Shown piece after piece: positions 7,808 through 38,642 of a stretch of DNA of 64,000 nt. Position numbers and translations under genes: made by a program. The notes beneath the pieces are model-generated. The model searched no databases. It worked only from the letters and a program-made list of their open reading frames with translations, and was not told where the DNA came from. The stretch lies in IMG/VR virus record IMGVR_UViG_3300044640_001495, positions 289,124-353,123 of that record. One strand, 5' to 3'. Position 1 is the stretch's first letter; every line of letters starts with the position of its first letter.

Positions 7808-8364
7808 ACTTTGATGCCTTTAGCAGTGCTCAGATACAGAGCAAGATTTGGCTCGTGGATCGATTAGAGCGTACACTTGAAGAACATAGACCTATTGAGG
7901 ACGGTTATCGTATATGGATTTTAGCGGGATGGTATGCCTTGGCTAATTTTTTAATCCGTACTAGAAATAAAATACCTGTGCTGGAGGTCCGTAGCTTTGA
8001 CCAAGATCCCGCATGTGAACCTATAGCAGAGGCCATCAACAATCTATGGGTCTATCGAGCTTGGGAATTCAAGGCACATACCGTTGACATCAATCTGTTG
8101 GAATATAAACCAAGACCAGATGTGATTATAAATTCCAGTGTTGAGCACATGACTTCGAGTCAATGGTACGCAAATATCCCAGCGGGCACAGTGGTATGTC
8201 TACAGGCCAGCGATATGCTAGATGAGGATCATGTTAATTCTATGTCCAGTATCAAGGACCTAATGCTAAAGTACCCCATGAGCGAACAGCTCTACGATGG
8301 CATTAAAAGATTTGAATTTGAAGACAAGGCCTTTAATCGAGTAATGATTATTGGCATCAAGTAG
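7804..8364 (+). CDS. putative SAM-dependent methyltransferase-like protein
   Basis: ILAGWY, SFDQD and DVIINSSVEHM motifs of a class I methyltransferase-like fold. Confidence 0.55.
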   Translation: MNFDAFSSAQIQSKIWLVDRLERTLEEHRPIEDGYRIWILAGWYALANFLIRTRNKIPVLEVRSFDQDPACEPIAEAINNLWVYRAWEFKAHTVDINLLEYKPRPDVIINSSVEHMTSSQWYANIPAGTVVCLQASDMLDEDHVNSMSSIKDLMLKYPMSEQLYDGIKRFEFEDKAFNRVMIIGIK

Positions 8365-21500: not shown

Positions 21501-21620
21501 TACTCGCTCCTGTTTGTGTGTATGTGTCAATTATACTGCCAAAAAGCCTCGGTGTCAACCTACGAAGTGCCCAGGCGTGTTGCAGGGTCTAGTGGTAGGC
21601 TGACACTTTGGCAACCCCTA

Positions 21621-22619: not shown

Positions 22620-22689
22620 TGGGTTCGCTCCTAATGTTTGTTTGTATGTGTCTATTATACAACTAATTTGGCTAGTTGTCAACCTAGTT

Positions 22690-26589: not shown

Positions 26590-26681
26590 AGTATTCGCTC
26601 CTAATGCTGTTTAAAAATGTATTATAGCACACCTTGTCCAAAATGTCAAGTGTGTGCGCAATAACCCTATGCGCTGTAGTG

Positions 26682-27156: not shown

Positions 27157-27216
27157 TGTGTGTCCTTTTGTGTGTGTAAGCTGTAATTATAACGCACAAC
27201 GTCCAAATTGTCAACC

Positions 27217-27253
27217 AAAAAAAAGCATAACCCTACACCTAGCAGGGTTATGC
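27217..27253 (-). terminator. Rho-independent terminator, overlapping an operator-like palindrome
   Basis: GCATAACCCT-N9-AGGGTTATGC stem followed by T8 on the minus strand. Confidence 0.75.
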
Positions 27254-27257
27254 CAAA

Positions 27258-27295
27258 GTTGCCTCTATACCGGGAGCGAATCGGTATTAGGCAAC
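27258..27295 (-). ncRNA. 3'-UTR hairpin displaying AUUCGCUCC (anti-RBS loop), copy 1
   Basis: GUUGCCU-A-AUACCG [AUUCGCUCC] CGGUAU-AG-AGGCAAC, spanning the stop codon and ending before the terminator. Confidence 0.6.
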
Positions 27296-27592
27296 AACAG
27301 CCGCTGTCTTCGCGACAGGGGCTTTGACCGCAGCCCGGGGGGCTGGGTTTTTCTTCTCTGCATAGGCAACAGCAGCTTGGATAGCAGCATTGCCTATGCC
27401 GAACTGGATAGACTTAAGGTGCTGTACAGCTTCTGCCTTAGTCATCTCTACTGGCAGCTCAACCAACTCAACGTCAGTGTGGCCGTTCTTTGCCAGGATC
27501 TTGATACGCATGGTATCGTTAGCGAAGCGCAATTTGGTCTTGCCTTCGAGGGTTGAAACACCTGCTACTGCAAATTTCTTATCGGTACTCAT
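27287..27592 (-). CDS. hypothetical protein with Ala/Lys/Pro-rich tail
   Basis: 101 aa; KLRFAND..RIKIL.KNGHTD core. Confidence 0.8.
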   Translation of the reverse strand: MSTDKKFAVAGVSTLEGKTKLRFANDTMRIKILAKNGHTDVELVELPVEMTKAEAVQHLKSIQFGIGNAAIQAAVAYAEKKNPAPRAAVKAPVAKTAAVVA

Positions 27593-27672
27593 TTTTAACT
27601 TCCTTCTGTGTGTGTAAAAATCATGCCAACCAATTCAGCATGTTATTAGTATAGCATCAATATTCGAATTGG

Positions 27673-27867
27673 TCAACTGTTTGGTTTACCAAATTGCGGA
27701 ACAACTTGAATACTGACGCTTTCCTTCTCGTCTAAGGCGGCGATGAACTCATCGTCAAAGACCAGATCCTGCATGTTCAAGTCGATCATGTGTTCGACTC
27801 GATCCATATCGGGTCTGCCATCGCTGGCACACTCGATTGTGAATTTAAATTCATATTTCCTTGTCAT
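27673..27867 (-). CDS. hypothetical protein
   Basis: 64 aa, coupled to the upstream ORF. Confidence 0.65.
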   Translation of the reverse strand: MTRKYEFKFTIECASDGRPDMDRVEHMIDLNMQDLVFDDEFIAALDEKESVSIQVVPQFGKPNS

Positions 27868-28478
27868 TTTGTTCCCTCATTGGCTGCAACGCCATCCTTA
27901 ATCCACTCAGTAAGCTCTTCCTCTTGCTCTGCTTCGTATTCACGAATGCTTTCTGAGATAGCAAATGCTTCGTCCAGTTCAGGATGATCACGCTCAATGT
28001 CGTCGGCACTCATGCCTTCGAGATTGATCTCTTGATCACCATGCTCATCATAGGCGCCAGCATAGGCCATACCACCTTCGTAATACATGGCGTTGACACC
28101 AAAGCCCAACTCCACCAACTTGTCATAGGCAGCGACTGGAGGGCTCCACGCTGAGTCGAACGATGTGTGTAGCATCTTACCATCAGGGTGGATATCACTC
28201 TGACCATCGCCACCTACATCCCACTTGGTGCCCCATTCACCTACGCAGAAGTCATACCAGTTGCCGTAACCATACTTCTCGCGATTCTCAGCAGTCTTGC
28301 GTTCCAATTCTTTCTGCTCGTCACCGTCACCTAACGATCCTGCAACGATCTGCAGATCCGTTGGCACCGGAATGAACTCATTGAGGAACTCTCCACGATC
28401 AAGTGCTTCTTTAGCACGAAGGATCATTGCTGGGTCTTCGTGGGTGAGTGTCAGTGTGTTGTTGCACCAATTTGGCAT
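27864..28478 (-). CDS. DUF1281/YubB-like ferredoxin-fold protein
   Basis: MPNWCNN...WYDFC...WGTKWD...FDSAWSPP motif set. Confidence 0.75.
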   Translation of the reverse strand: MPNWCNNTLTLTHEDPAMILRAKEALDRGEFLNEFIPVPTDLQIVAGSLGDGDEQKELERKTAENREKYGYGNWYDFCVGEWGTKWDVGGDGQSDIHPDGKMLHTSFDSAWSPPVAAYDKLVELGFGVNAMYYEGGMAYAGAYDEHGDQEINLEGMSADDIERDHPELDEAFAISESIREYEAEQEEELTEWIKDGVAANEGTK

Positions 28479-28487
28479 GTCGGCTCC

Positions 28488-28670
28488 TTAAAGATTAACA
28501 AATTTCCAGGGGTCTTGCGTAATCGTAGCGTCCTGGATCTCAACGCTAAGACTGAACTCAAATGTAGTTGCACGAGTAGGATACTCTTTAACCAACTCAG
28601 CAGCCAACTTAGAGAGGCTGTCATTACTCAGCACTGCAATCTCGTTAGCCAATCGTTCAATGTGTGTCAT
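28488..28670 (-). CDS. hypothetical protein
   Basis: 60-aa ORF in an operon. Confidence 0.65.
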   Translation of the reverse strand: MTHIERLANEIAVLSNDSLSKLAAELVKEYPTRATTFEFSLSVEIQDATITQDPWKFVNL

Positions 28671-28950
28671 ATTGATGATCCTTGAAAGTTGAAGTTACTG
28701 CATGAACTGCTTGCTTGCTCTTGCCACCGATGTGCCAACGATACTGGCCCATTGGGGTTTCGTATTCTTTCCAATCGTATATTGTGGCCACTGTGCCATC
28801 TTCAAATTCCAAACACCACTCCACTGTGGTCTTGTCGCCGCCGCCTTCGGGCTGGCCAAACACTTCTACCAGTTCATGGTAGTAAGCGGTTACATATCCC
28901 TGCAGGCTAGTGCCGTTTGCCTCTGTCCAATCTGTTTGTGTAAACTTCAT
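28657..28950 (-). CDS. hypothetical early protein
   Basis: GTSLQGY...KTTVEW...ATIYDWK...WHIGG; GGAGCGAA RBS. Confidence 0.75.
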   Translation of the reverse strand: MKFTQTDWTEANGTSLQGYVTAYYHELVEVFGQPEGGGDKTTVEWCLEFEDGTVATIYDWKEYETPMGQYRWHIGGKSKQAVHAVTSTFKDHQYDTH

Positions 28951-29010
28951 CTTCGCTCCTTTGTGTGTATGTGTTTATTATAGCGCCAAACTGCCAAACT
29001 GTCAACCAAT

Positions 29011-29364
29011 TTAAACAATAGCCCTACGGTGATTAGGGACATAATCACTGTAGATCTTTACAGCATGATTCTTTCTAACCCAGTCTACCAAACTCTGCGG
29101 ATCGCCGATCATCCAATCTTCTACATCCTTAAACTCAATGTCGTCCAGGGTGGTGAACATGTAGATTTCATAGGTTCGTTGACTATTGGCCTGTGCCCTC
29201 AACTTCATCATTGAAATCTGTCGACCCAACGGATTCTCAGTCTTTCTACGGCCACTGAGGATCTCAATCAACTGACCCTTTTCAAAGTTCTCAGGATGAA
29301 AGTGGGTGATGTCCTGCAGGGTTTCAAAGCCGGTGGAGTCCCACGCTGCCAAAATGTATCTCAT
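29011..29364 (-). CDS. hypothetical protein
   Basis: 117 aa, coupled to the upstream ORF. Confidence 0.7.
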   Translation of the reverse strand: MRYILAAWDSTGFETLQDITHFHPENFEKGQLIEILSGRRKTENPLGRQISMMKLRAQANSQRTYEIYMFTTLDDIEFKDVEDWMIGDPQSLVDWVRKNHAVKIYSDYVPNHRRAIV

Positions 29365-29567
29365 ACCCCAGCCCTCATAACTTCCATCAAGCGGTTCTGC
29401 AAGCGATCCACTTCTGCGTTCTCTACATAGAAGTCGGTGGTTGGATCCCAGTACTGGCCTGCCTTTGGATCGTAATACAAGACCCGATCAACGAACCAAA
29501 ACGGTCCTTCCAGCCCCTTGCGTGGTTGCCACTTTTCGTCTCTCTTGCCCAGGGTGATGAATGCCAT
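29361..29567 (-). CDS. hypothetical early protein
   Basis: GLEGPF...YYDPKAGQYWDPTTDFY; own promoter and RBS. Confidence 0.75.
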   Translation of the reverse strand: MAFITLGKRDEKWQPRKGLEGPFWFVDRVLYYDPKAGQYWDPTTDFYVENAEVDRLQNRLMEVMRAGV

Positions 29568-29631
29568 TTCGCGCTCCTTTGTGTTTCAGTATATGTATAT
29601 TATACGATCAAAAGCCCAAACTGTCAACCAA

Positions 29632-29940
29632 TTACCAGGCAATCTCTTTAGAAGCGTAACGGATGTGACCTTCGTAGTTCAACTGGCTCTGCTCGAACTC
29701 TGTGAGAGCATCATCAGCCACGATAGACCAATCAATAATGGTCTCGCGGAAGGCATCATTGTCCTGCTCAATCTGACCACGCACACCCATCACAGTCTCC
29801 GTGACCTTGTTGATGTTGATGTTCTTGACCACGTAGTCTGAACCGCCCTTGGCTTTCCAGTACTGTGGGCACTCACCAACTCCGTCCCAATCGTGGGCAC
29901 CGTAGTTCTCGTAGACCTGTGTAGTGATTAAAAGTTTCAA
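29632..29940 (-). CDS. hypothetical early protein
   Basis: TQVYENYGAHDWDG.GECPQYWKAKGG; TTG start after GGAGCGAA. Confidence 0.75.
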   Translation of the reverse strand: MKLLITTQVYENYGAHDWDGVGECPQYWKAKGGSDYVVKNININKVTETVMGVRGQIEQDNDAFRETIIDWSIVADDALTEFEQSQLNYEGHIRYASKEIAW

Positions 29941-29997
29941 GTTTCGCTCCTTGTTTGCTAGTGTATGTGTATATTATAGCAGGGATTGCTCAAAGTG

Positions 29998-30234
29998 TCA
30001 ACCAATTTCAGTGTTGCAGAATTGCCACATCTTTAATTGCTCTCCACGCAGGCCCATTAGGACGCCTTCGTAGTCCCTGTATGAACAGAAGGCCCACTTT
30101 CGGTCTGGGCGATACACATAGAAATCATAGTCCCGCTCAGTGTTGTGCTGAGTGCAGATCCGTTTGGCTGTCGAAGCCAATTTGTAATACTTCTGCATAT
30201 GACCCGACTTCTCTTCGTATACTATCCAACCCAT
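29998..30234 (-). CDS. hypothetical protein
   Basis: 78 aa, TAATG-coupled. Confidence 0.65.
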   Translation of the reverse strand: MGWIVYEEKSGHMQKYYKLASTAKRICTQHNTERDYDFYVYRPDRKWAFCSYRDYEGVLMGLRGEQLKMWQFCNTEIG

Positions 30235-30500
30235 TAACCGTAGTCCTTTTTGCCGCCGTGAGTTTCATTCCAATCGTAGCCTGCGAGGTACTCCGCAATG
30301 CTGTCTGCATCTGTGACCTCAACCCGTGGCCCCGAGTCGCCACCAACTCCACCGTGGTGAGGGTCTATCTGTCGACCGTAGTATGAATCTGATGACCCAC
30401 GATCATAGAGACTACCGTGGCGCTCACGAACAAATTGGGGTCCACGCAGAGCACGGATCAACTGTTTCTGTTCGTCTTCTGGCAGGATGTGTAGGTACAT
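30234..30500 (-). CDS. hypothetical protein
   Basis: HGSLYDRGSSDSYYGR...EYLAGY motif. Confidence 0.7.
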   Translation of the reverse strand: MYLHILPEDEQKQLIRALRGPQFVRERHGSLYDRGSSDSYYGRQIDPHHGGVGGDSGPRVEVTDADSIAEYLAGYDWNETHGGKKDYG

Positions 30501-30501
30501 G

Positions 30502-30681
30502 TCAACTGTTCATGGATACGAAGGGACTGTAGTCTTCAGGAGCGTCTTGTACGCCCATGTCTTGTATGTAGCCAAGCACCTGCTCGACAGGGCAATCCAA
30601 CAGGTCTGCAATCATCTTGGCACTGTGGCCTTCGATATACAGTTGCTCAACATCATATGCTAGGTCTGCCATCTTGCTCAT
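30502..30681 (-). CDS. small HTH-like protein (59 aa)
   Basis: Manual: MSKMADLAYDVEQLYIEGHSAKMIADLLDCPVEQVLGYIQDMG... Confidence 0.6.
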   Translation of the reverse strand: MSKMADLAYDVEQLYIEGHSAKMIADLLDCPVEQVLGYIQDMGVQDAPEDYSPFVSMNS

Positions 30682-30800
30682 TTGACATCCCTCACAACTT
30701 CTTGCACCTTGTTCACGCCCTTGTCGGCGATCTGTGCAATGCCTGTGAAGCCAACAGTGGCAACAATAATACCAGCGATAAATGCTGCTAAGTGACTCAT
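30678..30800 (-). CDS. small membrane peptide (40 aa)
   Basis: Manual: MSHLAAFIAGIIVATVGFTGIAQIADKGVNKVQEVVRDVK; promoter at 30836. Confidence 0.6.
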   Translation of the reverse strand: MSHLAAFIAGIIVATVGFTGIAQIADKGVNKVQEVVRDVK

Positions 30801-30941
30801 CATATCTATCAACCTTTCTGTGTGTGTAAGTCTATATTATACAATCAATCTACCAAACCGTCAACCCCTAGATTACATGCACACGTAAGCAGCGGGGCCT
30901 ACTAGCAGTGTGGCTTTTTTGCCACACTGCCGGCACTCCAA

Positions 30942-32156
30942 TTAGGCAGTCTCTTTCTCGTAGATAACAGTCTGACCAAAGGGTGCTTCTGCTTCTGTAT
31001 TGCCTTTGACAATAAAGATTGTGTCGCAGTAGTCCTCGTCACCCCAACTACCGCAGGGGTAGCCGTCTGTGAACATAATGAACTTCTTAGGACGAATACC
31101 ATTCTCTTCCATAAACTCCCAGTTCACAGCAAAGTCAGTACCGCCACCGCCCTGTGGCTCATACTCAAATAGCTCTTCACTATTGTCCTGCGAGAACTCT
31201 TTGTGGTTATAGATCTCTGTGTCAAAGCACCACAGGTTAATCTTAAAGTCCTCATACTGATCAACAATGCCCTTGACCTCTGACAGGAATACAGTTGCAT
31301 CCTCTTGTCCAATGCTACCTGACATATCAATTGAAATACCAATGTCAATTGTAGTTGCTTCTTTCATGCCCGGCAGTATGGCACCTGAGTGCATACTCTT
31401 ACGGTTAGGACGAGTAAAGGAATAGTCGTTGCGGATAATGCTCTGTATCTCTTGACGCACAAGATCACGCCAGCTAATCTTAGGCTCAGTCATGTCCTTG
31501 ATCAAACGCTGGATGCCTGCGGGCACTTTGCCTGCACCTGCTGCCGCGGCACTCTGCACCATGGCTTCTTTGATCTCATCGCGGATCTTCTGTGCTTCTT
31601 CTTTAGTCATGCCAGGCATACCCTTGCCCTGCTTGTCTCCATCACCCTCTTTGCCCGGTGCATTGCCGTCTTCGTTAATGTGCTCGTCCAACAGGTCACC
31701 AAGTTGCTGAAGCAGTTGTGGCATAGAGATCTTCTCTGCCTTCTCGTATAGCTCGTCGTAGATCTCTTCCCAGGCTTTGCCGCGATACTTGGCATCGTAG
31801 CAGATCTTGACTTCAGTGATCTTCTCACCAATGCGTTCGTCTACAAGGATCTGATTGACAGCGTAGTCTTGTGCAATGTTAGACAGCTGGCGATCGCGTG
31901 AACCTACACGACCAAAGTGGTCAAACACACAATGGCAAATCTCGTGTCCGAATAGGAACTCTAGTTTCTTGACTGAGAGCTTCTCAACGAACTTAGTATT
32001 GTAATAGAAATTACGGCCATTAGTTGCCGCAGTAGGGCACCATTCGTCTGCTTGAATCAGTTGCATACGAGTTGCCATGTTGCCAAAGAATGGTGCCTTA
32101 AGCAACAGTCCCACACGGGCTGTGGTTAGTTTATCGATAATCGGATCAAATGCCAT
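30942..32156 (-). CDS. metallopeptidase-like plus VWA domain protein (DUF2201-type)
   Basis: TAATNG, HEICH, DYAVN; MIDAS DMSGS, GGGGTDF, FTDGY. Confidence 0.88.
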   Translation of the reverse strand: MAFDPIIDKLTTARVGLLLKAPFFGNMATRMQLIQADEWCPTAATNGRNFYYNTKFVEKLSVKKLEFLFGHEICHCVFDHFGRVGSRDRQLSNIAQDYAVNQILVDERIGEKITEVKICYDAKYRGKAWEEIYDELYEKAEKISMPQLLQQLGDLLDEHINEDGNAPGKEGDGDKQGKGMPGMTKEEAQKIRDEIKEAMVQSAAAAGAGKVPAGIQRLIKDMTEPKISWRDLVRQEIQSIIRNDYSFTRPNRKSMHSGAILPGMKEATTIDIGISIDMSGSIGQEDATVFLSEVKGIVDQYEDFKINLWCFDTEIYNHKEFSQDNSEELFEYEPQGGGGTDFAVNWEFMEENGIRPKKFIMFTDGYPCGSWGDEDYCDTIFIVKGNTEAEAPFGQTVIYEKETA

Positions 32157-32212
32157 TAGTCGCTCTCCTTAGTATGTGTATATTATAGCATCTATTTACA
32201 CACCTGTCAACC

Positions 32213-32261
32213 AAAAAAGTGGGCGGGCAAGCCCTGAGAAGCCTCCCGCCCTTGCAATGGG
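32213..32261 (-). terminator. Rho-independent terminator
   Basis: GGGCGGG...CCCGCCC stem followed by a T-run after the AAA gene. Confidence 0.65.
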
Positions 32262-32268
32262 CGAGGTC

Positions 32269-33354
32269 TTAATTCTCCATTGCACTCAAAACATACTTGC
32301 CAAAACGCTTGTGGAACTCGTCAAAGCTCTTCATCTTTGTAGCGTCAAAGGGCAAGTTGTAATTTGTCAAGCCCGTCTTAGCACCCATCACCACCAACTC
32401 TGTTGGGAAGTTATCCATCATGTAGCGGAAGAAGCAGTCTGCCATAGCATCCCAACCTTTAGACTTCTTCTCTGCTTGATCCTTAAGTTCATAGCACAGG
32501 CTCACAGTCAAAGAGTACATGGCTGACACTTCCTTAATCTGCAGGTCCTTGACCTTGCCTTCCAAGATGTCCAACGCCTTAGGCAAGCGACCTGCAATCT
32601 TACGGTGAGCCATAAACTTAATAGCCAGGCCATCACCTACGGCACCCGCAACCAAATTGTGCATGGTGTCAACGTCGCAGTCCTCGTCCTTGAGCAAGTC
32701 GCTCACAAACACCCACGAGCGTGGAGTTGCAAAGGCCTTGCTGGGCGACTTAGGATCGAAGTCGTATAAGTCCTGCTTGGCGAAACCCACATAACCCAAC
32801 ACCTCAGGGTGAACGTCATTCATAACAGCCCACTCTTGGAAGTCATCAAAATCTACCTTTGCTTCCAAGTGAATGAAACGGTTAGCCAGCGGAGCAGGCA
32901 TACGATATGTCACGCCACGATCGCCTTCTCTGTTACCAGCGGCAACCACGTCAACACCCTTAGGCAATTCGTAAGTACCAACACGACGGTTAAGGATCAA
33001 CTGATAGGCCGCGGCCTGTACCGCTGGAGGAGCACTGTTCAATTCATCTAAGAAGATGATCGCAGTTGACTCTGGGTTGGTAGGAAGCTCTGCAGGGGGA
33101 GCCCAAACCATTGTGCCCTTGTCTGCATTGTAATAGGGGATACCCTTAATGTCTGTAGGCTCCCACAGGGCCAGGCGAACGTCGATAACTTCGCGACCAG
33201 CGTCTTCGCCGATCTGCTTAACGATGTCACTCTTACCAATACCTGGAGGGCCCCAAAGGAACACAGGGCGGCGTTTCTTGATTGCAAAACGAATTGATTT
33301 CTTTGCGTTCTTGGGACCAACTTGTCGAACGCTAATGTCTGTTGACTTTGCCAT
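32269..33354 (-). CDS. MoxR-like AAA+ ATPase
   Basis: GPPGIGKS, FLDELN, AAGNR, PLANRF, TPRSW. Confidence 0.9.
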   Translation of the reverse strand: MAKSTDISVRQVGPKNAKKSIRFAIKKRRPVFLWGPPGIGKSDIVKQIGEDAGREVIDVRLALWEPTDIKGIPYYNADKGTMVWAPPAELPTNPESTAIIFLDELNSAPPAVQAAAYQLILNRRVGTYELPKGVDVVAAGNREGDRGVTYRMPAPLANRFIHLEAKVDFDDFQEWAVMNDVHPEVLGYVGFAKQDLYDFDPKSPSKAFATPRSWVFVSDLLKDEDCDVDTMHNLVAGAVGDGLAIKFMAHRKIAGRLPKALDILEGKVKDLQIKEVSAMYSLTVSLCYELKDQAEKKSKGWDAMADCFFRYMMDNFPTELVVMGAKTGLTNYNLPFDATKMKSFDEFHKRFGKYVLSAMEN

Positions 33355-33427
33355 AATAAGACCTCTTTCTTTCTCAGTTAAAGTTGCTTTCTCAGTGTTA
33401 ATAGTATAACACCGAACAGCTCAGTTG

Positions 33428-34063
33428 TCAAGCTCTTTTTACGAAGTTTAATTGTGTTGTATTATCGCTACGAACACTTTTAATCTTTGCTTTGATAGTT
33501 AACTTCTGCCCTGCTTCTAAGTTACTATTATACCAGAAATCCACGAAACTGTCAACCAGTTTAGCAGTAACCCTGAACTTGTCATAGTCTTTGCTGTAGT
33601 AGCACTTGACCACCTCGATCTCGCCCTGGATCTTGTCACCCACAGCGCCCTGCAATTGAGTAGAAGCACGGACTTCGCGAGCCAACTCGTTACGGATTTG
33701 ATCGCGCAGCATCACACCAGGCAAGCAGCTTACGATGGCAAACTCCAACATGTTACGGCCAGTGAACTCATCCATCTGTGCAATGCGGAGTGCCTGCTGT
33801 TCGAAGTCGTTGATCTTGCCCGAGATCTGTTTCAGCAAGAAGCCATTGAAGTAGTTGCGAACCGCACGACCCTTCTCAACGTCCTCTGCTGTGGCTTCGG
33901 TGAATGCACCCTCGCGGAGCCATTGCTTGACCATTAGCTTGTTGGCCTGGGTGACTCGCTTCTGGCAGTCGTTCTCCAGCACGTAGACATCTTCTTTGAA
34001 GTAGCCTCCGTTGATACGATCTGCTGCTACCGCCAATCCCCAAACTTGATCTGCTGTAAACAT
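33428..34063 (-). CDS. hypothetical early protein (C-terminal OB-fold-like)
   Basis: 211 aa; GGAGCGAA RBS and promoter. Confidence 0.75.
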   Translation of the reverse strand: MFTADQVWGLAVAADRINGGYFKEDVYVLENDCQKRVTQANKLMVKQWLREGAFTEATAEDVEKGRAVRNYFNGFLLKQISGKINDFEQQALRIAQMDEFTGRNMLEFAIVSCLPGVMLRDQIRNELAREVRASTQLQGAVGDKIQGEIEVVKCYYSKDYDKFRVTAKLVDSFVDFWYNSNLEAGQKLTIKAKIKSVRSDNTTQLNFVKRA

Positions 34064-34140
34064 TGTTCGCTCCGTTGTTTCAGTATATATCTATTATAGC
34101 ATCAGTCGCCCAAAGTGTCAACCAACTGGAGTGCCGGTCA

Positions 34141-34171
34141 AAGAAAAAAGGTGTTGTATTTCTACAACACC
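34141..34171 (-). terminator. Rho-independent terminator
   Basis: GGTGTTGTA-GAAA-TACAACACC followed by TTTTTTCTT. Confidence 0.8.
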
Positions 34172-34172
34172 C

Positions 34173-34212
34173 TCAAAAGACGCCCCGGGAGCGAATCGGC
34201 TTGTCTATTTGA
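34173..34212 (-). ncRNA. 3'-UTR hairpin displaying AUUCGCUCC (anti-RBS loop), copy 2
   Basis: UCAAA.AGAC...CCG [AUUCGCUCC] CGG...GUCU.UUUGA between stop codon and terminator; shares the 15-mer CCGATTCGCTCCCGG with copy 1. Confidence 0.6.
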
Positions 34213-34220
34213 AACCCTAA

Positions 34221-34493
34221 TTAAAGAGTGATGCCCATTGCTTGAGCTTTGTAGCCTAGAGCAACGATCTCACGTGATGGCTTGCCCATCACATATTCAG
34301 TTACCTGAACACCGTTGCCTGCTGTACGGCTGTTGGTATAAACAGCGTAGCCTGCTTGACGAATGCGGCTGGCTTCTGCTGCCAGGTTGCCAACACCTAG
34401 GTCATGCTTGGCCTGTGCTGGAGTAAGTGCTTTACCATTGTAAAGTGCTGTGAAGACTTTGAAAGTCTTGGTTTTTGGATTGAATCTCTTCAT
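34221..34493 (-). CDS. winged helix-turn-helix DNA-binding protein
   Basis: L.NGKALTPAQA...GVGNLAAEASRIRQAGYAVYT...TEY pattern; start MKRFN at 34493. Confidence 0.7.
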   Translation of the reverse strand: MKRFNPKTKTFKVFTALYNGKALTPAQAKHDLGVGNLAAEASRIRQAGYAVYTNSRTAGNGVQVTEYVMGKPSREIVALGYKAQAMGITL

Positions 34494-34781: not shown

Positions 34782-34998
34782 ACTCCGCTATCTCTTGTAG
34801 ACGTTTAACTTCGGCCAGCTCTTTCTCAATCTCTTTGTTCTTGCGTTTGTTTCCTACGCTAGACCCACGATTGTAGACTAGCCATACATGATCTTCGCAA
34901 TAGACCTTGCCAGGCCACAAGCTCTTGCATCCGCACATAGTGAACGGAGACTCCTTCTGCTCCGGACCTATGTACTGGCACCCTGCAATATCGCTCAC
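34768..34998 (-). CDS. Cys/His zinc-binding protein resembling the GcrA C-terminal domain
   Basis: CQYIG......FTMCG........YCEDH...VY. Confidence 0.5.
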   Translation of the reverse strand: MSDIAGCQYIGPEQKESPFTMCGCKSLWPGKVYCEDHVWLVYNRGSSVGNKRKNKEIEKELAEVKRLQEIAEYENE

Positions 34999-36050
34999 GC
35001 AACACCTCGCTTCATAACAGTGACCTCTGCCATTGCTTCCCAGTTGTCAGCAAACGCCTTGCGCAATTGTGCAACCTTCAACACCGTACGCAGGCTCAGC
35101 TCGCGTAGTTTAGCACGGTTGTTAGACACAAAGTCCACAACATCAATCTTGGCCACATCGCTCAGCTCGTATTCGTCCAGCATGCCGTCTGCAACGATCT
35201 GCTTGATACGCAGGACCTTCTCACGATCTGTATCCATCTGCAGATCAATGTAGTGGCAACGGCTCTCAAGAGCGGCAAGGTGATCCTGTAGCTTCTTAGA
35301 GCGTACATTCTCAAACTTGATGTTGGTGATAAAGATCGCACCAGCCTTGAACTCGAAGCGATCTGGGATGCCTTCGCTTCGCAGGATACGGCTGTCAGTG
35401 TTCCAGCTGATAGTACGCTTCTTAGAACTGTCCAAAGCCGCCTTAAGAATGTTCAGGCTCAAGTCGTCCAGCAACACTGAGTCGCAGTCATCAAACACAA
35501 TAACATTCTTCTCACTTGAGAACTCGTAGAGCTTAGAATACAAGCCAATGGCACTCATAGCACCTTTGACAATCTCGTAGCGTGGCTTGCGCTCGCCTAA
35601 GGTATTGAACAAGTCGTCCTTAGTCAACACTTCTTCAACACCAAACGATTTGCCTACACCTGGGGGACCTGTCACAATCATAGCACGTACATCGCCTGCT
35701 TTCACAGCCTTAGTCATGTCTGTAAGTACTTGGAAGCGAGCACGAGTCTTTTCGATCAGCTCGTCATCTGTGATATGTGCTACAGCCGAGTCAGCCACCT
35801 TGAGCTGTACCAAACTGTTCTCTCCTACAGGAGCCTCGTCAATGTGCGCGACCACGCGGTATGCATTAATGCCAGAGACCTTGACGCGGATCTTCTTGTA
35901 GGGGTTGCGACCACCTTCAATCTCATCGCCTGCAAGGCAAGTAATTGCCTCGCCGTCAAAGTCCTTGACCATTTGCAAGCGGATGCCTGGGGTGATCAAA
36001 TTCTTACGGGCACCGTAAGCACCTTCTGTAATCTCAACTAGTGTAGCCAT
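34995..36050 (-). CDS. AAA+ ATPase
   Basis: GPPGVGKS, VFDDCD, FITN, ALESR; start MATLVE at 36050 after GGAGCGAA. Confidence 0.85.
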   Translation of the reverse strand: MATLVEITEGAYGARKNLITPGIRLQMVKDFDGEAITCLAGDEIEGGRNPYKKIRVKVSGINAYRVVAHIDEAPVGENSLVQLKVADSAVAHITDDELIEKTRARFQVLTDMTKAVKAGDVRAMIVTGPPGVGKSFGVEEVLTKDDLFNTLGERKPRYEIVKGAMSAIGLYSKLYEFSSEKNVIVFDDCDSVLLDDLSLNILKAALDSSKKRTISWNTDSRILRSEGIPDRFEFKAGAIFITNIKFENVRSKKLQDHLAALESRCHYIDLQMDTDREKVLRIKQIVADGMLDEYELSDVAKIDVVDFVSNNRAKLRELSLRTVLKVAQLRKAFADNWEAMAEVTVMKRGVA

Positions 36051-36131
36051 TTTTCGCTCCTGTGTGTTAGTGTATGTGTCTATTATAGCGCACTCTAGGG
36101 GTTTCGTCAACCCCTAGTTGTGCTGTGGCAT

Positions 36132-36599: not shown

Positions 36600-36657
36600 T
36601 GTATCGCTCCAATATTGTTAAGTTAAGTGTCTATTATAGCAGCTTTCGCTCAACCCG

Positions 36658-36888
36658 TCAACCTAGTGTGGCAATAACCCTACCCACTGTAGGGTCAAAC
36701 TTCAAGAACACCTTGGTGCTGTCCGTGCCGCCCTTTACAGGAAAGGTACACATGTAACAGAACTCGCCCCCATTTGTGATCCCTAGGAACTTGCGGCCCG
36801 TGAATTGGTAGTCCTCATTGTCTAGGGCCTTGGTCAATGCTGCCGCTGTAAACGTTGTCAGCGTAGTCAGTTGTTCAGCTGTGATCAT
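36658..36888 (-). CDS. hypothetical protein
   Basis: 76 aa; AGGAG RBS. Confidence 0.7.
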   Translation of the reverse strand: MITAEQLTTLTTFTAAALTKALDNEDYQFTGRKFLGITNGGEFCYMCTFPVKGGTDSTKVFLKFDPTVGRVIATLG

Positions 36889-37713: not shown

Positions 37714-37771
37714 CTTTCGCTCCTTTGTGTGTGTATGTGTCTATTATAGCGCCATTAGCCCAATCAGTCAA

Positions 37772-38357: not shown

Positions 38358-38442
38358 TGGTAGGACCGACCGGAATCGAACCGGTATGCATTGCTGCGAG
38401 AGATTTTAAGTCTCTTGTGTCTACCTATTTCACCACGGTCCT
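38358..38442 (-). tRNA. tRNA-Leu(UAA)
   Basis: AGGACCG/CGGTCCT acceptor stem, AGAGA-CT-TAA-AA-TCTCT anticodon arm, long variable arm, TTCGATT T-loop, encoded CCA. Confidence 0.95.
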
Positions 38443-38468
38443 CAGTCTCGATGCTGCTGCAACGTTGT

Positions 38469-38545
38469 TGGCCAGTCCTACTGGATTCGAACCAGTGGCC
38501 TACAGCTTAGAAGGCTGTTGCTCTATCCAACTGAGCTAAGGACTG
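38469..38545 (-). tRNA. tRNA-Arg(UCU)
   Basis: CAGTCCT/AGGACTG acceptor stem, ACAGC-CT-TCT-AA-GCTGT, TTCGAAT, CCA. Confidence 0.95.
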
Positions 38546-38564
38546 CTGCTGTACTATTAATGTT

Positions 38565-38642
<78 letters not shown>

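Follow-up and report, generated by a model that had tools for sequence, protein, structure and literature searches.

Organization of the early block

The window, i.e., the whole stretch of 64,000 nucleotides that was analysed, comes from the genome (about 353 kb) of an uncultured jumbo phage distantly related to Pseudomonas phage PA5oct. It harbors a block of early genes, all transcribed from the minus strand, in which two hairpins with the same apical loop lie close to the ends of two putative transcription units. The features of the locus are the following (for each early cassette, the energy is the predicted net pairing of its leader with the hairpin loop).

37717..37771 (-), early cassette: promoter (TTGACT-17-TATAAT), CA-rich leader and RBS GGAGCGAA at 37717-37723; -12.2 kcal/mol
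36604..36661 (-), early cassette with RBS GGAGCGAU at 36604-36610; -9.6 kcal/mol
36054..36110 (-), early cassette of the AAA gene with RBS GGAGCGAA at 36054-36060; -10.6 kcal/mol
34995..36050 (-), AAA_16 ATPase gene with a GGAGCGAA RBS
34221..34493 (-), 90-aa winged-helix (wHTH) gene (HTH_39), the last gene before T1; its own RBS is AAAGGAAAC
34173..34212 (-), putative anti-RBS hairpin 2: outer stem UUCAAAUAGAC paired with GUCUUUUGA, inner stem CCG/CGG, 9-nt loop AUUCGCUCC at 34188-34196
34141..34174 (-), intrinsic terminator T1 (12-bp stem, 34174-34147, plus U-tract), ending the first early transcription unit
34067..34121 (-), early cassette immediately downstream of T1 with RBS GGAGCGAA at 34067-34073; -11.6 kcal/mol
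32160..32168 (-), near-variant RBS GGAGAGCGA (one inserted dinucleotide); intermediate value, -7.2 kcal/mol
29944..30001 (-), early cassette with RBS GGAGCGAA at 29944-29950 and a TTG start; -10.0 kcal/mol
29568..29577 (-), near-variant RBS GGAGCGCGAA; -8.9 kcal/mol
28953..29005 (-), early cassette with RBS GGAGCGAA at 28953-28959; -12.5 kcal/mol
27287..27592 (-), 101-aa gene of unknown function, the last gene before T2; its own RBS is GAAGGAAG
27258..27295 (-), putative anti-RBS hairpin 1: the outer stem includes the last codons and the stop of the 101-aa gene, the inner stem is UACCGG-type, and the 9-nt apical loop AUUCGCUCC lies at 27273-27281
27216..27254 (-), intrinsic terminator T2 (13-bp stem, 27254-27224, 6 GC pairs, plus U8; followed by TTTTTTTT), ending the second early transcription unit
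26595..26649 (-), early cassette with RBS GGAGCGAAU at 26595-26601, a full 9-nt complement of the loop, in the third unit, which has no such hairpin in the window; -12.1 kcal/mol
22625..22682 (-), early cassette with RBS GGAGCGAA at 22625-22631 (third unit); -9.3 kcal/mol
21504..21558 (-), early cassette with RBS GGAGCGAG at 21504-21510 (third unit); -12.4 kcal/mol

The sequence-only reading had reported that nine early genes share the extended RBS GGAGCGA and that its exact complement occurs twice in hairpin loops placed just before intrinsic terminators, and this observation was confirmed. TCGCTCC is present on the plus strand at exactly the nine expected positions and on the minus strand at 27273 and 34188, for a total of 11 matches against 3.24 expected, a number reached by 0 of 100 shuffled sequences. 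All nine plus-strand sites read GGAGCGA on the minus strand, 2-5 nt before a start codon (eight ATG and one TTG), seven of them are GGAGCGAA, and each one lies at a fixed place in a repeated cassette composed of a sigma-70 promoter, TTGAC(A/G/T)-N17-TATAAT, a CA-rich leader and GGAGCGA. The 15-mer CCGATTCGCTCCCGG is exact at 27270-27284 and at 34185-34199 on the minus strand, and each copy lies between a stop codon and one of the only two convincing intrinsic terminators found in 60 kb. Even though a 15-mer repeated twice in 64 kb is not remarkable on its own, its placement and the comparative data described below make it significant.

Both copies fold with the 9-nt loop AUUCGCUCC unpaired, and the predicted cost of opening the loop is 0.01 kcal/mol for copy 1 and 0.32 kcal/mol for copy 2. 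Copy 1 is a strong hairpin (z = -6.4 in an 86-nt context), whereas copy 2 has only a 3-bp inner stem plus an outer stem and on its own is no more stable than shuffled sequences (z = +0.38), so that its reality rests on its conservation in relatives.

The two genes preceding the hairpins lack GGAGCGA, as proposed. The TATACT -10 that had been assigned to both was confirmed for the 101-aa gene (TTGACC-17-TATACT at 27676-27648); in the case of the wHTH gene a TATACT exists, but the promoter scan found no acceptable -35, suggesting that this gene is more likely co-transcribed from upstream promoters. No internal promoter was detected upstream of the hairpins. In a scan of 20 window proteins, the wHTH protein matched PF14090 (E = 5.9e-8), while the 101-aa protein matched no Pfam or PHROG family; 142 stretches related to the former and 45 loci related to the latter were retrieved.

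Conservation of the tag and of the loop in related phages

In order to check whether the loop is conserved, relatives were retrieved by protein homology and not by the motif. The exact loop is present in 48 of 61 distinct wHTH 3'UTRs, with the outer stem co-varying, and 28 of 34 distinct relatives carry an orthologous hairpin after the 101-aa gene, in which the core UCGCUCC is invariant, while loop positions 1-2 and the closing stem vary (CCG/CGG, CUG/CAG, UCG/CGA). This mirrors the RBS profile, in which GGAGCGA is fixed, position 8 is A in 64% of cases and position 9 is free. However, loop position 1 (A or G) is more conserved than pairing with the variable RBS position 9 would require.

GGAGCGA marks 469 of 1,156 distinct promoter-led starts in the family (41%), but 0 of 56 genes outside the early block in the window, which use ordinary SDs; hence, the host 16S tail is not what selects GGAGCGA. 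On the gene strand, 82 of 96 TCGCTCC sites are in hairpin loops, nearly all of them next to terminators. As a negative control, another conserved RBS cassette (TCGGAGT, 192 sites in 1 Mb) has no complementary loops.

In many relatives, the tandem hairpins and the terminator directly follow the AAA gene, whose GGAGCGA RBS is kept in about 68 of 72 distinct orthologue upstream regions. The RBS of the gene next to the hairpin is rarely GGAGCGA (13 of 130) and the next downstream RBS often is (56 of 102), although these counts are not independent.

The tag and the loop also tend to be lost together: 14 of 16 relatives without the hairpin have no GGAGCGA start, while 17 of 17 relatives with it have 1-10 such starts. 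Moreover, a sister clade (clade 2) uses GAGGGC(A) as its early RBS, and its orthologous AAA 3'UTR carries 2-5 hairpins with (U)GCCCUC loops, so that four of seven positions changed on both partners. Strict terminator-proximal hairpin counts are 29:1 in clade 1 and 0:27 in clade 2, and no cross-combinations were found among 157 AAA proteins. The two clades are separated by a 98* branch, and two subclades lost both features. It must be underlined that the switch between the clades is essentially one evolutionary event, although it affected dozens of sites, plus two or more co-losses, so that phylogenetic replication is low; furthermore, the sub-lineages with AAGGGCA starts (L257 and L288) keep UGCCCUC loops, leaving a terminal A-C mismatch.

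Predicted pairing between loop and RBS

The loop is apical and unpaired in all the folds obtained. The net predicted pairing with the loop ranges from -9.3 to -12.5 kcal/mol for GGAGCGA leaders, from -3 to -9 for near-variants, and from -0.3 to -2.4 for most of the others, with one AAAGAGC site at -6.0. Only about 7 nt of a 9-nt loop can pair without strain, a constraint which these energies ignore.

A possible anti-RBS RNA element

On the whole, these data suggest that the two hairpins belong to a family-wide RNA element of uncultured, PA5oct-related jumbo phages, in which about 40% of the promoter-led early genes carry a class-specific extended Shine-Dalgarno sequence (GGAG plus the extension CGA(A)) and the early transcription units end in one to five terminator-proximal hairpins whose open apical loops present the exact complement, UCGCUCC (usually AUUCGCUCC). 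It is proposed that the loop base-pairs with these RBSs through a loop-to-single-strand contact of 7-9 bp, a duplex predicted to be much stronger than that between GGAG and the 16S tail, so that it would compete with the 30S subunit. In this view, since every transcript started at any promoter of a unit would end at the same terminator, the anti-RBS RNA would be made only after the unit has been transcribed, accumulating in step with early transcription, and it could then act within the same molecule or on other early mRNAs, either as whole transcripts or as stable 3' fragments protected by the terminator. The expected result would be a delayed, protein-free dampening or shut-off of early-gene translation. 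The motif, its structure, placement and conservation, and the co-loss and compensatory co-variation of RBS and loop are directly documented by the sequences, and they give good support to pairing between loop and RBS; conversely, the occurrence of this pairing in vivo, its repressive effect, its timing, and its action in cis or in trans are inferred from sequence alone. The location of three GGAGCGA genes in a unit with no hairpin in this window argues that at least some of the action is in trans. Short anti-RBS sequences far from the RBS are able to repress in other systems (icaR, PMC3868564; Gill et al. 2025, 10.1101/2025.11.27.690947). This explanation is regarded as more likely than not, with moderate confidence.

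The interpretation given in the sequence-only reading, according to which the two mRNAs or sRNAs processed from their 3'UTRs pair with many early mRNAs at once and shut off a translational regulon, is therefore only partly supported. The core of it, i.e., that the loops are anti-RBS elements pairing with the shared early RBS, is strongly supported by the comparative evidence, and the conditions under which it would have failed turned out in its favor, since the loop is conserved, the hairpins and the terminators are oriented for minus-strand transcripts, and the host 16S tail does not account for the tag. On the other hand, shut-off as the outcome and a processed sRNA acting in trans remain inferences, and nothing shows that the two genes preceding the hairpins are special: they appear to be simply the last genes of two early transcription units, and in relatives the same element follows a different gene, the AAA gene. 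Transcripts from upstream GGAGCGA-type promoters should also end at these terminators, so that pairing within one molecule is equally possible.

Alternative explanations

The alternative that survives best, although it is considered unlikely, is that the same pairing occurs but is not repressive: the 3' loop might fold back on the 5' RBS of the same transcript, protecting early mRNAs from 5'-end-dependent RNases, from an RBS-directed nuclease of the host or phage, or from a defence system, or it might only fine-tune mRNA half-life. In agreement with this idea, there is no convincing terminator between the upstream GGAGCGA promoters and T1 or T2, so that one RNA should carry both partners; in relatives the AAA gene has the GGAGCGA RBS and, directly after its stop, tandem loops; and contacts between 5' and 3' UTRs control stability in hbs (PMC5737220). 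However, occupying the SD should block 30S binding, and experimental anti-RBS sequences repress and destabilise (PMC3868564; 10.1101/2025.11.27.690947). In addition, the three GGAGCGA genes of the third unit have no hairpin in the window, and two to five loops per UTR exceed what one 5' end needs.

A less probable possibility is that the motif works as double-stranded DNA, recognised just downstream of early promoters and near terminators by a phage DNA-binding regulator (for example, the adjacent winged-helix protein) whose specificity changed in the sister clade, dragging all sites along. This would also explain the enrichment on both strands, the co-loss and the concerted switch, and a wHTH gene does sit next to one copy. 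It does not explain, however, why the terminator-side copies are the complement on the transcribed strand (29:3 in clade 1 and 27:1 in clade 2), why they sit in apical loops of hairpins whose stems co-vary, or why they form the tip of terminator hairpins; moreover, the wHTH gene is absent from many relatives that keep the element after the AAA gene.

It is similarly improbable that the hairpin is a protein-binding RNA signal, such as an antitermination (nut/put-like), processing or stabilising element at terminators, whose complementarity to the RBS is incidental. Its position next to or inside intrinsic terminators and the conservation of loop position 1 beyond what pairing needs are in favor of this idea, but the invariant 7 nt are exactly the complement of the invariant 7 nt of the RBS, both changed together at four positions in clade 2, and neither a boxA/boxB-like feature nor, in the sequences scanned, an Rfam match was found.

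Lastly, it is very unlikely that the conserved sequences are by-products of mobile regulatory cassettes (terminator plus early promoter plus RBS, like T4 PeSLs) spread by recombination with no function for the loop itself, because, although the module hairpin, terminator, CCGGCACTCC, promoter, leader, RBS recurs between different genes and the last gene before it varies, the flanks and stems diverge freely while the 7-nt loop core stays fixed, and recombination predicts neither complementarity nor a compensatory switch.

Comparison with known systems

No Rfam family matches the element: E-value-threshold scans of the 20-40 kb portion of the window and of the sequences L167, L047 and L041 gave only tRNAs and chance-level hits. 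No cultured phage among those examined carries it. The Rfam C4 family includes phage immunity antisense RNAs processed from the same transcript (P1/P7 c4, P4 CI), in which loops of a small structured phage RNA pair with non-overlapping target sites, including an RBS, on transcripts of the same operon; those RNAs control one operon in lysogenic immunity, and not a regulon of early genes in a lytic jumbo phage.

The possibility that the hairpin mimics a tRNA T-arm (5-bp stem and 7-nt T-loop with G53-C61 and U54-A58) is not supported: there are three mismatches to the T-arm of the phage tRNA-Leu, position 53 would be A opposite C61 and position 58 would be C when aligned by eye, ARAGORN finds no tRNA at any copy, and the clade 2 loops show no resemblance. 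The RNA features of a lambda-type nut site, which works with an N-type protein (a boxB hairpin with a 5-nt GNRA-like loop, plus boxA), are not recognised either, since the loop is 9 nt long and pyrimidine-rich and no boxA-like motif was seen in the flanks.

In T4-type PeSL mobile regulatory cassettes, a stem-loop or terminator followed by a sigma-70 early promoter recurs between small early ORFs, as occurs here; PeSLs are defined by recombination-mediated shuffling and are not reported to have a loop complementary to the RBS. In the case of the T4 RegB endoribonuclease (PMC3014915), to which the sequence-only reading had compared the element, phage early mRNAs are distinguished by an extended SD (T4 consensus GG*AGRAYARAA) and are functionally inactivated at that site, while middle and late genes escape. 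The comparison is a functional analogy only, as RegB is a protein nuclease helped by S1, whereas here the reader of the tag is proposed to be RNA and no cleavage is implied.

In the icaR mRNA of Staphylococcus aureus (PMC3868564), and also in B. subtilis hbs (PMC5737220), a short pyrimidine-rich anti-SD motif in a 3'UTR pairs with an SD region and, in icaR, blocks the initiation complex. The location in a 3'UTR is shared, since both copies of the window, as well as those of relatives, lie between a stop codon and a terminator. As for complementarity to the SD of the same mRNA, the RBSs of the adjacent genes are not complementary to the loop, transcripts from upstream GGAGCGA promoters should reach the same terminators since no terminator lies between them, and in relatives the AAA gene carries both partners. 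However, icaR is one mRNA regulating itself with a plain anti-SD (UCCCCUG) and RNase III, for which a 7-9 bp duplex is short; here, the motif sits in hairpin loops next to terminators, often in 2-5 copies, matches a class-specific SD extension shared by dozens of genes, and co-evolves with that extension between clades.

Base-pairing sRNAs derived from 3'UTRs, such as CpxQ and SroC, share the Rho-independent terminator of the parent mRNA and have a conserved, accessible seed upstream of it, with many possible targets at their RBS; CisR is a further example (PMC13250501). Both of these features were found here, i.e., the shared terminator and an invariant, accessible UCGCUCC that co-varies with its putative targets, but the seed lies in a hairpin loop rather than in a single-stranded 5' seed, and the proposed targets are the phage's own early genes, marked by a dedicated tag.

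Organization of the early-gene block

The window (43.9% G+C) has no close relative among deposited phages, since a megablast search gave no hit. More distant DNA and protein searches pointed to PA5oct-like phages; the helicase, the AAA ATPases and the MoxR/VWA pair of the window are 46-51% identical, at the amino acid level, to those of the Pseudomonas jumbo phage PA5oct. The IMG/VR contigs that are 100% identical over the genes examined reach 353 kb and come from lakes (IMG samples 3300044640, 3300042430, 3300042567 and 3300042319). Between about 39 and 20 kb, the minus strand is an early-gene block holding 26 promoters that match TTGACA-N17-TATAAT at 11 or 12 of 12 positions, most of them followed by a CA-rich leader and a small gene. 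Further features of this block (all on the minus strand) are the following:

38358-38642: a tRNA trio (Leu-UAA, Arg-UCU, Met-CAU), conserved, in varying order, in many relatives and in the sister clade (clade 2) described below.
34128-34137: a conserved decamer, CCGGCACTCC, between the terminator T1 and the -35 of the next early promoter.
30942-33354: a MoxR-type AAA ATPase (32269-33354) and a DUF2201 metallopeptidase/VWA protein (30942-32156), encoded side by side.
27622-27642: an 8-bp hairpin followed by AUUUUU, at the beginning of the 5'UTR of a 101-aa gene, between its promoter (27676-27648) and its RBS; it could be a 5' stabiliser or an attenuator.

Nine of the leaders end in GGAGCGA, seven of them in GGAGCGAA, 2-5 nt before the start codon; other leaders have near-variants, such as GGAGAGCGA, GGAGCGCGAA, GGAGCAG and GGAGCUG. 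The 15-mer CCGATTCGCTCCCGG occurs twice on the same strand, each copy lying between a stop codon and a strong intrinsic terminator, and both copies fold with AUUCGCUCC as an unpaired apical loop. The description given by the sequence-only reading, i.e., a shared extended RBS and two 3'UTR hairpins complementary to it, is therefore correct. It had, however, assigned a promoter of its own to each of the two genes preceding the hairpins, and this has to be corrected for one of them: the winged-helix gene has no acceptable -35 element and is probably co-transcribed from upstream promoters.

Across 60 kb, the terminator scans exceed their shuffled expectation only slightly, and the only two long-stem, U-tract terminators are the two that follow the hairpins (T1, after the winged-helix gene, and T2, after the 101-aa gene). 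Transcripts started at 39-34.6 kb should therefore all end at T1, and those started at 34.1-27.6 kb should all end at T2. Such RNAs would carry GGAGCGA sites near their 5' ends and the complementary loop at their 3' end, and the two genes preceding the hairpins appear to be simply the last genes of these units. A third unit, starting at 27.2 kb, contains three GGAGCGA sites but no complementary loop within the window.

Distribution of the hairpins in related phages

An exact search for the 15-mer in IMG/VR retrieved at least 120 stretches, a number of an order that, by our estimate, chance alone could give. However, most of the matches are intergenic and lie in relatives sharing the tRNA trio Leu-UAA, Arg-UCU and Met-CAU. 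The motif is found after winged-helix orthologues, after orthologues of the 101-aa gene, as the very tip of intrinsic terminators, in tandem, and with other closing stems, for example CCUAGG on both sides of the loop.

In order to avoid circularity, relatives were then retrieved by protein only. Of 61 distinct winged-helix 3'UTRs, 48 have the exact loop, one has a variant that keeps UCGCUCC, and 11 have only a terminator; the outer stem changes in a compensatory way. Of 34 distinct 3'UTRs of the 101-aa gene (protein identity down to 49%), 28 keep UCGCUCC; loop positions 1 and 2 vary (A/G, U/C), and the closing stem switches between CCG/CGG, CUG/CAG and UCG/CGA. The three closing pairs hold in 26-27 of these 28 sequences, with four C-G to U-A double changes. 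On the gene strand, 82 of 96 distinct TCGCTCC sites are in a hairpin-loop context, nearly all beside terminators.

A mimicry of the tRNA T-arm was also considered, since the 15-mer matches the T-arm of the phage tRNA-Leu with three mismatches, and pairs of matches 61-76 nt apart suggested tRNA arrays. This possibility was rejected: ARAGORN found no tRNA at any copy, the defining T-loop pairs are broken, and the loops of clade 2 are unrelated.

The extended RBS as a tag of early genes

Among 1,156 distinct promoter-led start sites in the related loci, 469 contain GGAGCGA, 78 contain xGAGCGA and 263 contain GGAGC followed by something else; position 8 is A in 64% and position 9 is free, and the commonest spacing from GAGCGA to ATG is 3 nt. 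The conserved part of the RBS (7 nt, then a mostly-A, then a free position) is therefore the mirror image of the conserved part of the loop. The AAA gene keeps GGAGCGA in about 68 of 72 distinct orthologue upstream regions, although its leader diverges.

The possibility that the tail of the 16S rRNA of the (unidentified) host explains GGAGCGA was rejected, since none of the 56 genes called outside the early block of the window uses it, these genes having ordinary or weak SDs, and since a sister clade uses a different extension. The extension is therefore a class tag and not a demand of the host ribosome.

The association between the hairpins and the neighbouring RBSs was also examined: the gene preceding the hairpin has a GGAGCGA RBS in 13 of 130 cases, and the next gene in 56 of 102. 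This is suggestive, but the counts are not independent and do not decide between an action in cis and one in trans.

Co-loss and co-variation of tag and loop

Of 16 relatives whose anchor gene lacks the hairpin, 14 have no GGAGCGA start at all, whereas all 17 sampled hairpin-bearing relatives have 1-10. One hairpin-less relative, locus L167 (from a 357 kb contig), instead uses AGAGGGCAA at eight starts. The 3'UTR of its AAA orthologue contains four GCCCUC motifs, three of which read UGCCCUC, and they sit in three strong hairpins (z = -6.1), including the terminator loop. In the leaders of L167 (for example at 8154, 9031 and 11291), a second partial target, UAGGGCAAAC, is present about 10 nt upstream of the AGAGGGCAAAC RBS, so that each of these clade 2 leaders may offer two sites to the multi-loop 3'UTR.

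Using the L167 AAA protein as bait, 80 loci were returned, about 45 distinct ones of which form a clade (clade 2, as opposed to clade 1 with GGAGCGA) whose dominant start-site hexamers are GAGGGC, AGGGCA and AGAGGG. In this clade, the AAA 3'UTR carries 2-5 hairpins with (U)GCCCUC loops, some of which are again terminator tips. GGAGCGA and GAGGGCA differ at four of seven positions, and UCGCUCC and UGCCCUC carry the four matching changes.

Terminator-proximal hairpins were counted using 7-mers and a 4-bp stem, since a 6-mer with a 3-bp stem filter proved too permissive. Loci with GGAGCGA starts have 29 such hairpins with TCGCTCC and one with TGCCCTC, whereas loci with GAGGGC starts (all retrieved by protein) have none with TCGCTCC and 27 with TGCCCTC. 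Among 157 unique AAA proteins, the pairings are distributed as follows.

Combinations of start-site tag and loop among the AAA proteins
GGAGCGA with UCGCUCC loops: 84
GGAGCGA with GCCCUC loops: 0
GAGGGC or AGGGCA with GCCCUC loops: 31
GAGGGC or AGGGCA with UCGCUCC loops: 0

In the tree of the AAA proteins, the two states lie on opposite sides of a branch with 98% SH-aLRT support, and two long-branch subclades have lost both the tag and the loops. This amounts to one concerted switch affecting dozens of sites, plus at least two co-losses; it is strong evidence for a functional link, even though it does not represent many independent events.

A search for a third pair of tag and loop did not disclose any. 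The loci L283 and L284 look like decayed clade 2 states. In L283 (IMGVR_UViG_3300040809_000996), a long-branch relative, the early leaders (starts at 2809, 3143, 3950, 4227 and 6157) carry AACUCC 8-10 nt upstream of a GGAGA(U/C) RBS, i.e., a local anti-SD inside each leader, which may be a different solution to the same control problem. A different conserved RBS cassette (TCGGAGT, 192 sites in 1 Mb), of the type found in locus L239, served as a control: it has only 24 same-strand complements, below chance, and none of them is in a hairpin. The long form of this start-site cassette, CATTTCGGAGTTGAAGAATG, recurs several times per contig in more than 118 viral contigs (L239 and L323-L440), without a promoter upstream and without complementary loops.

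PA5oct has neither a conserved extended RBS nor a long AAA 3'UTR, and so it provided neither a third state nor transcriptome evidence. Its orthologue of the AAA_16 gene (EST35_0359; locus L242, 4861-6015; 46% identity over 255 residues) is annotated as "thioredoxin" in MK797984.1 and as unknown function in the RefSeq copy; the thioredoxin label is probably wrong.

Predicted energetics of the loop-RBS interaction

The loop costs 0.0-0.3 kcal/mol to open. The net predicted interaction with the 70-nt leaders falls into three classes: -9.3 to -12.5 kcal/mol for the nine GGAGCGA leaders, -3 to -9 kcal/mol for near-variants, and -0.3 to -2.4 kcal/mol for the rest, with one AAAGAGC site at -6.0; these figures ignore the geometric limit on pairing within a closed loop. 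The loop contains UUCG, which, judging from its sequence, fits the YUNR U-turn motif of antisense recognition loops.

Possible role of the hairpins

The most economical reading of these data is a direct RNA-RNA pairing of the loop with the early RBS. The interpretation advanced in the sequence-only reading, i.e., that these RNAs pair with many early mRNAs at once and shut off their translation, is supported only in part: the comparisons document the motifs, their structure and placement, their conservation, their joint loss and their compensatory change, whereas the pairing in vivo, its repressive effect, and its action in cis or in trans are inferred. Experimental precedent says that short anti-RBS sequences repress translation and destabilise mRNA even from far away (PMC3868564; 10.1101/2025.11.27.690947), so repression is the likeliest outcome. 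In this view, the loop would be made only when a unit has been fully transcribed and would be shared by every nested transcript; it could therefore act as a built-in delay. The third unit, which has no loop in the window, and the multi-loop UTRs both argue for some action in trans, possibly by a processed small RNA. T4 RegB, to which the sequence-only reading had compared the system, is a fair functional analogy, because it too acts on an extended early SD, GG*AGRAYARAA (PMC3014915), but it is not a relative.

Among the alternatives, a double-stranded DNA site for a regulator would explain the concerted switch, but it would not explain the fixed orientation, the loop placement or the co-varying stems. 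A protein-binding signal does not predict compensatory change in a second motif, and chance is excluded.

Mechanistically, the element belongs with anti-SD 3'UTR elements and 3'UTR-derived sRNAs. What is new is a dedicated class-specific SD extension, the multivalent terminator-proximal loops that are proposed to read it, and their co-evolution across clades of giant phages. No Rfam family matches at the hairpins, the closest cultured phage lacks the system, and literature searches found no description of this element or of anything equivalent; the element occurs in hundreds of metagenomic contigs from genomes of about 350 kb, the complete contigs being of 344-364 kb.

A broader hypothesis, which is possible but remains tentative, is that giant phages use an addressable, protein-free translation code, in which early mRNAs would carry a clade-specific 3-nt extension of the Shine-Dalgarno sequence as a tag, and the 3' ends of the same early transcription units would produce multivalent hairpin RNAs whose loops read that tag. 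This would give a self-timed shut-off of the whole early regulon, an RNA counterpart of T4 RegB, with tag and anti-tag co-evolving as orthogonal pairs (GGAGCGA with UCGCUCC; GAGGGCA with UGCCCUC). If the pairing works as proposed, it would be a case of a virus controlling a whole temporal class of its own genes through a shared RBS tag read by an RNA rather than a protein; how early gene expression is switched off is known for very few large lytic phages. The two naturally co-evolved pairs are a ready-made orthogonality test, and they could serve as small portable translation switches. The finding also suggests that unexplained extended SD motifs in phage genomes may be address labels rather than ribosome-affinity features.

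Other conserved motifs near the hairpins

The decamer CCGGCACTCC is found at the same place in most type-A relatives (for example loci L121, L128 and L131), and it survives in relatives whose flanks differ. Since it ends in CUCC, read-through RNA would carry a second anti-SD-like stretch; it could equally be a promoter-upstream or protein-binding site. In a subset of relatives (loci L024, L079, L114, L152, L160 and L164), another recurring intergenic motif, TGTTGCAAAAAAGCCACA, follows the terminator and precedes CCGGCACTCC.

An extra, unstructured copy of the anti-RBS motif sits directly at or after the stop codon in clade 2 loci (for example L246, L260 and L265-L269) and in the clade 1 loci L001, L024, L079 and L114. 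In clade 2 it reads UA-GCCCUC-ACGCUC, whereas in some clade 1 members it reads UAA followed by GUCGCUCC within a few bases. A terminating ribosome would cover this copy, so it could couple the exposure of the motif to translation.

Lastly, in the relatives L060, L032, L097, L055, L022 and L064, the terminators whose tip is the anti-RBS loop are followed by a recurring G-rich motif of the form GGGGTCGGGG(C/T)ATATA instead of a sigma-70 promoter, which may represent a phage-specific promoter class.
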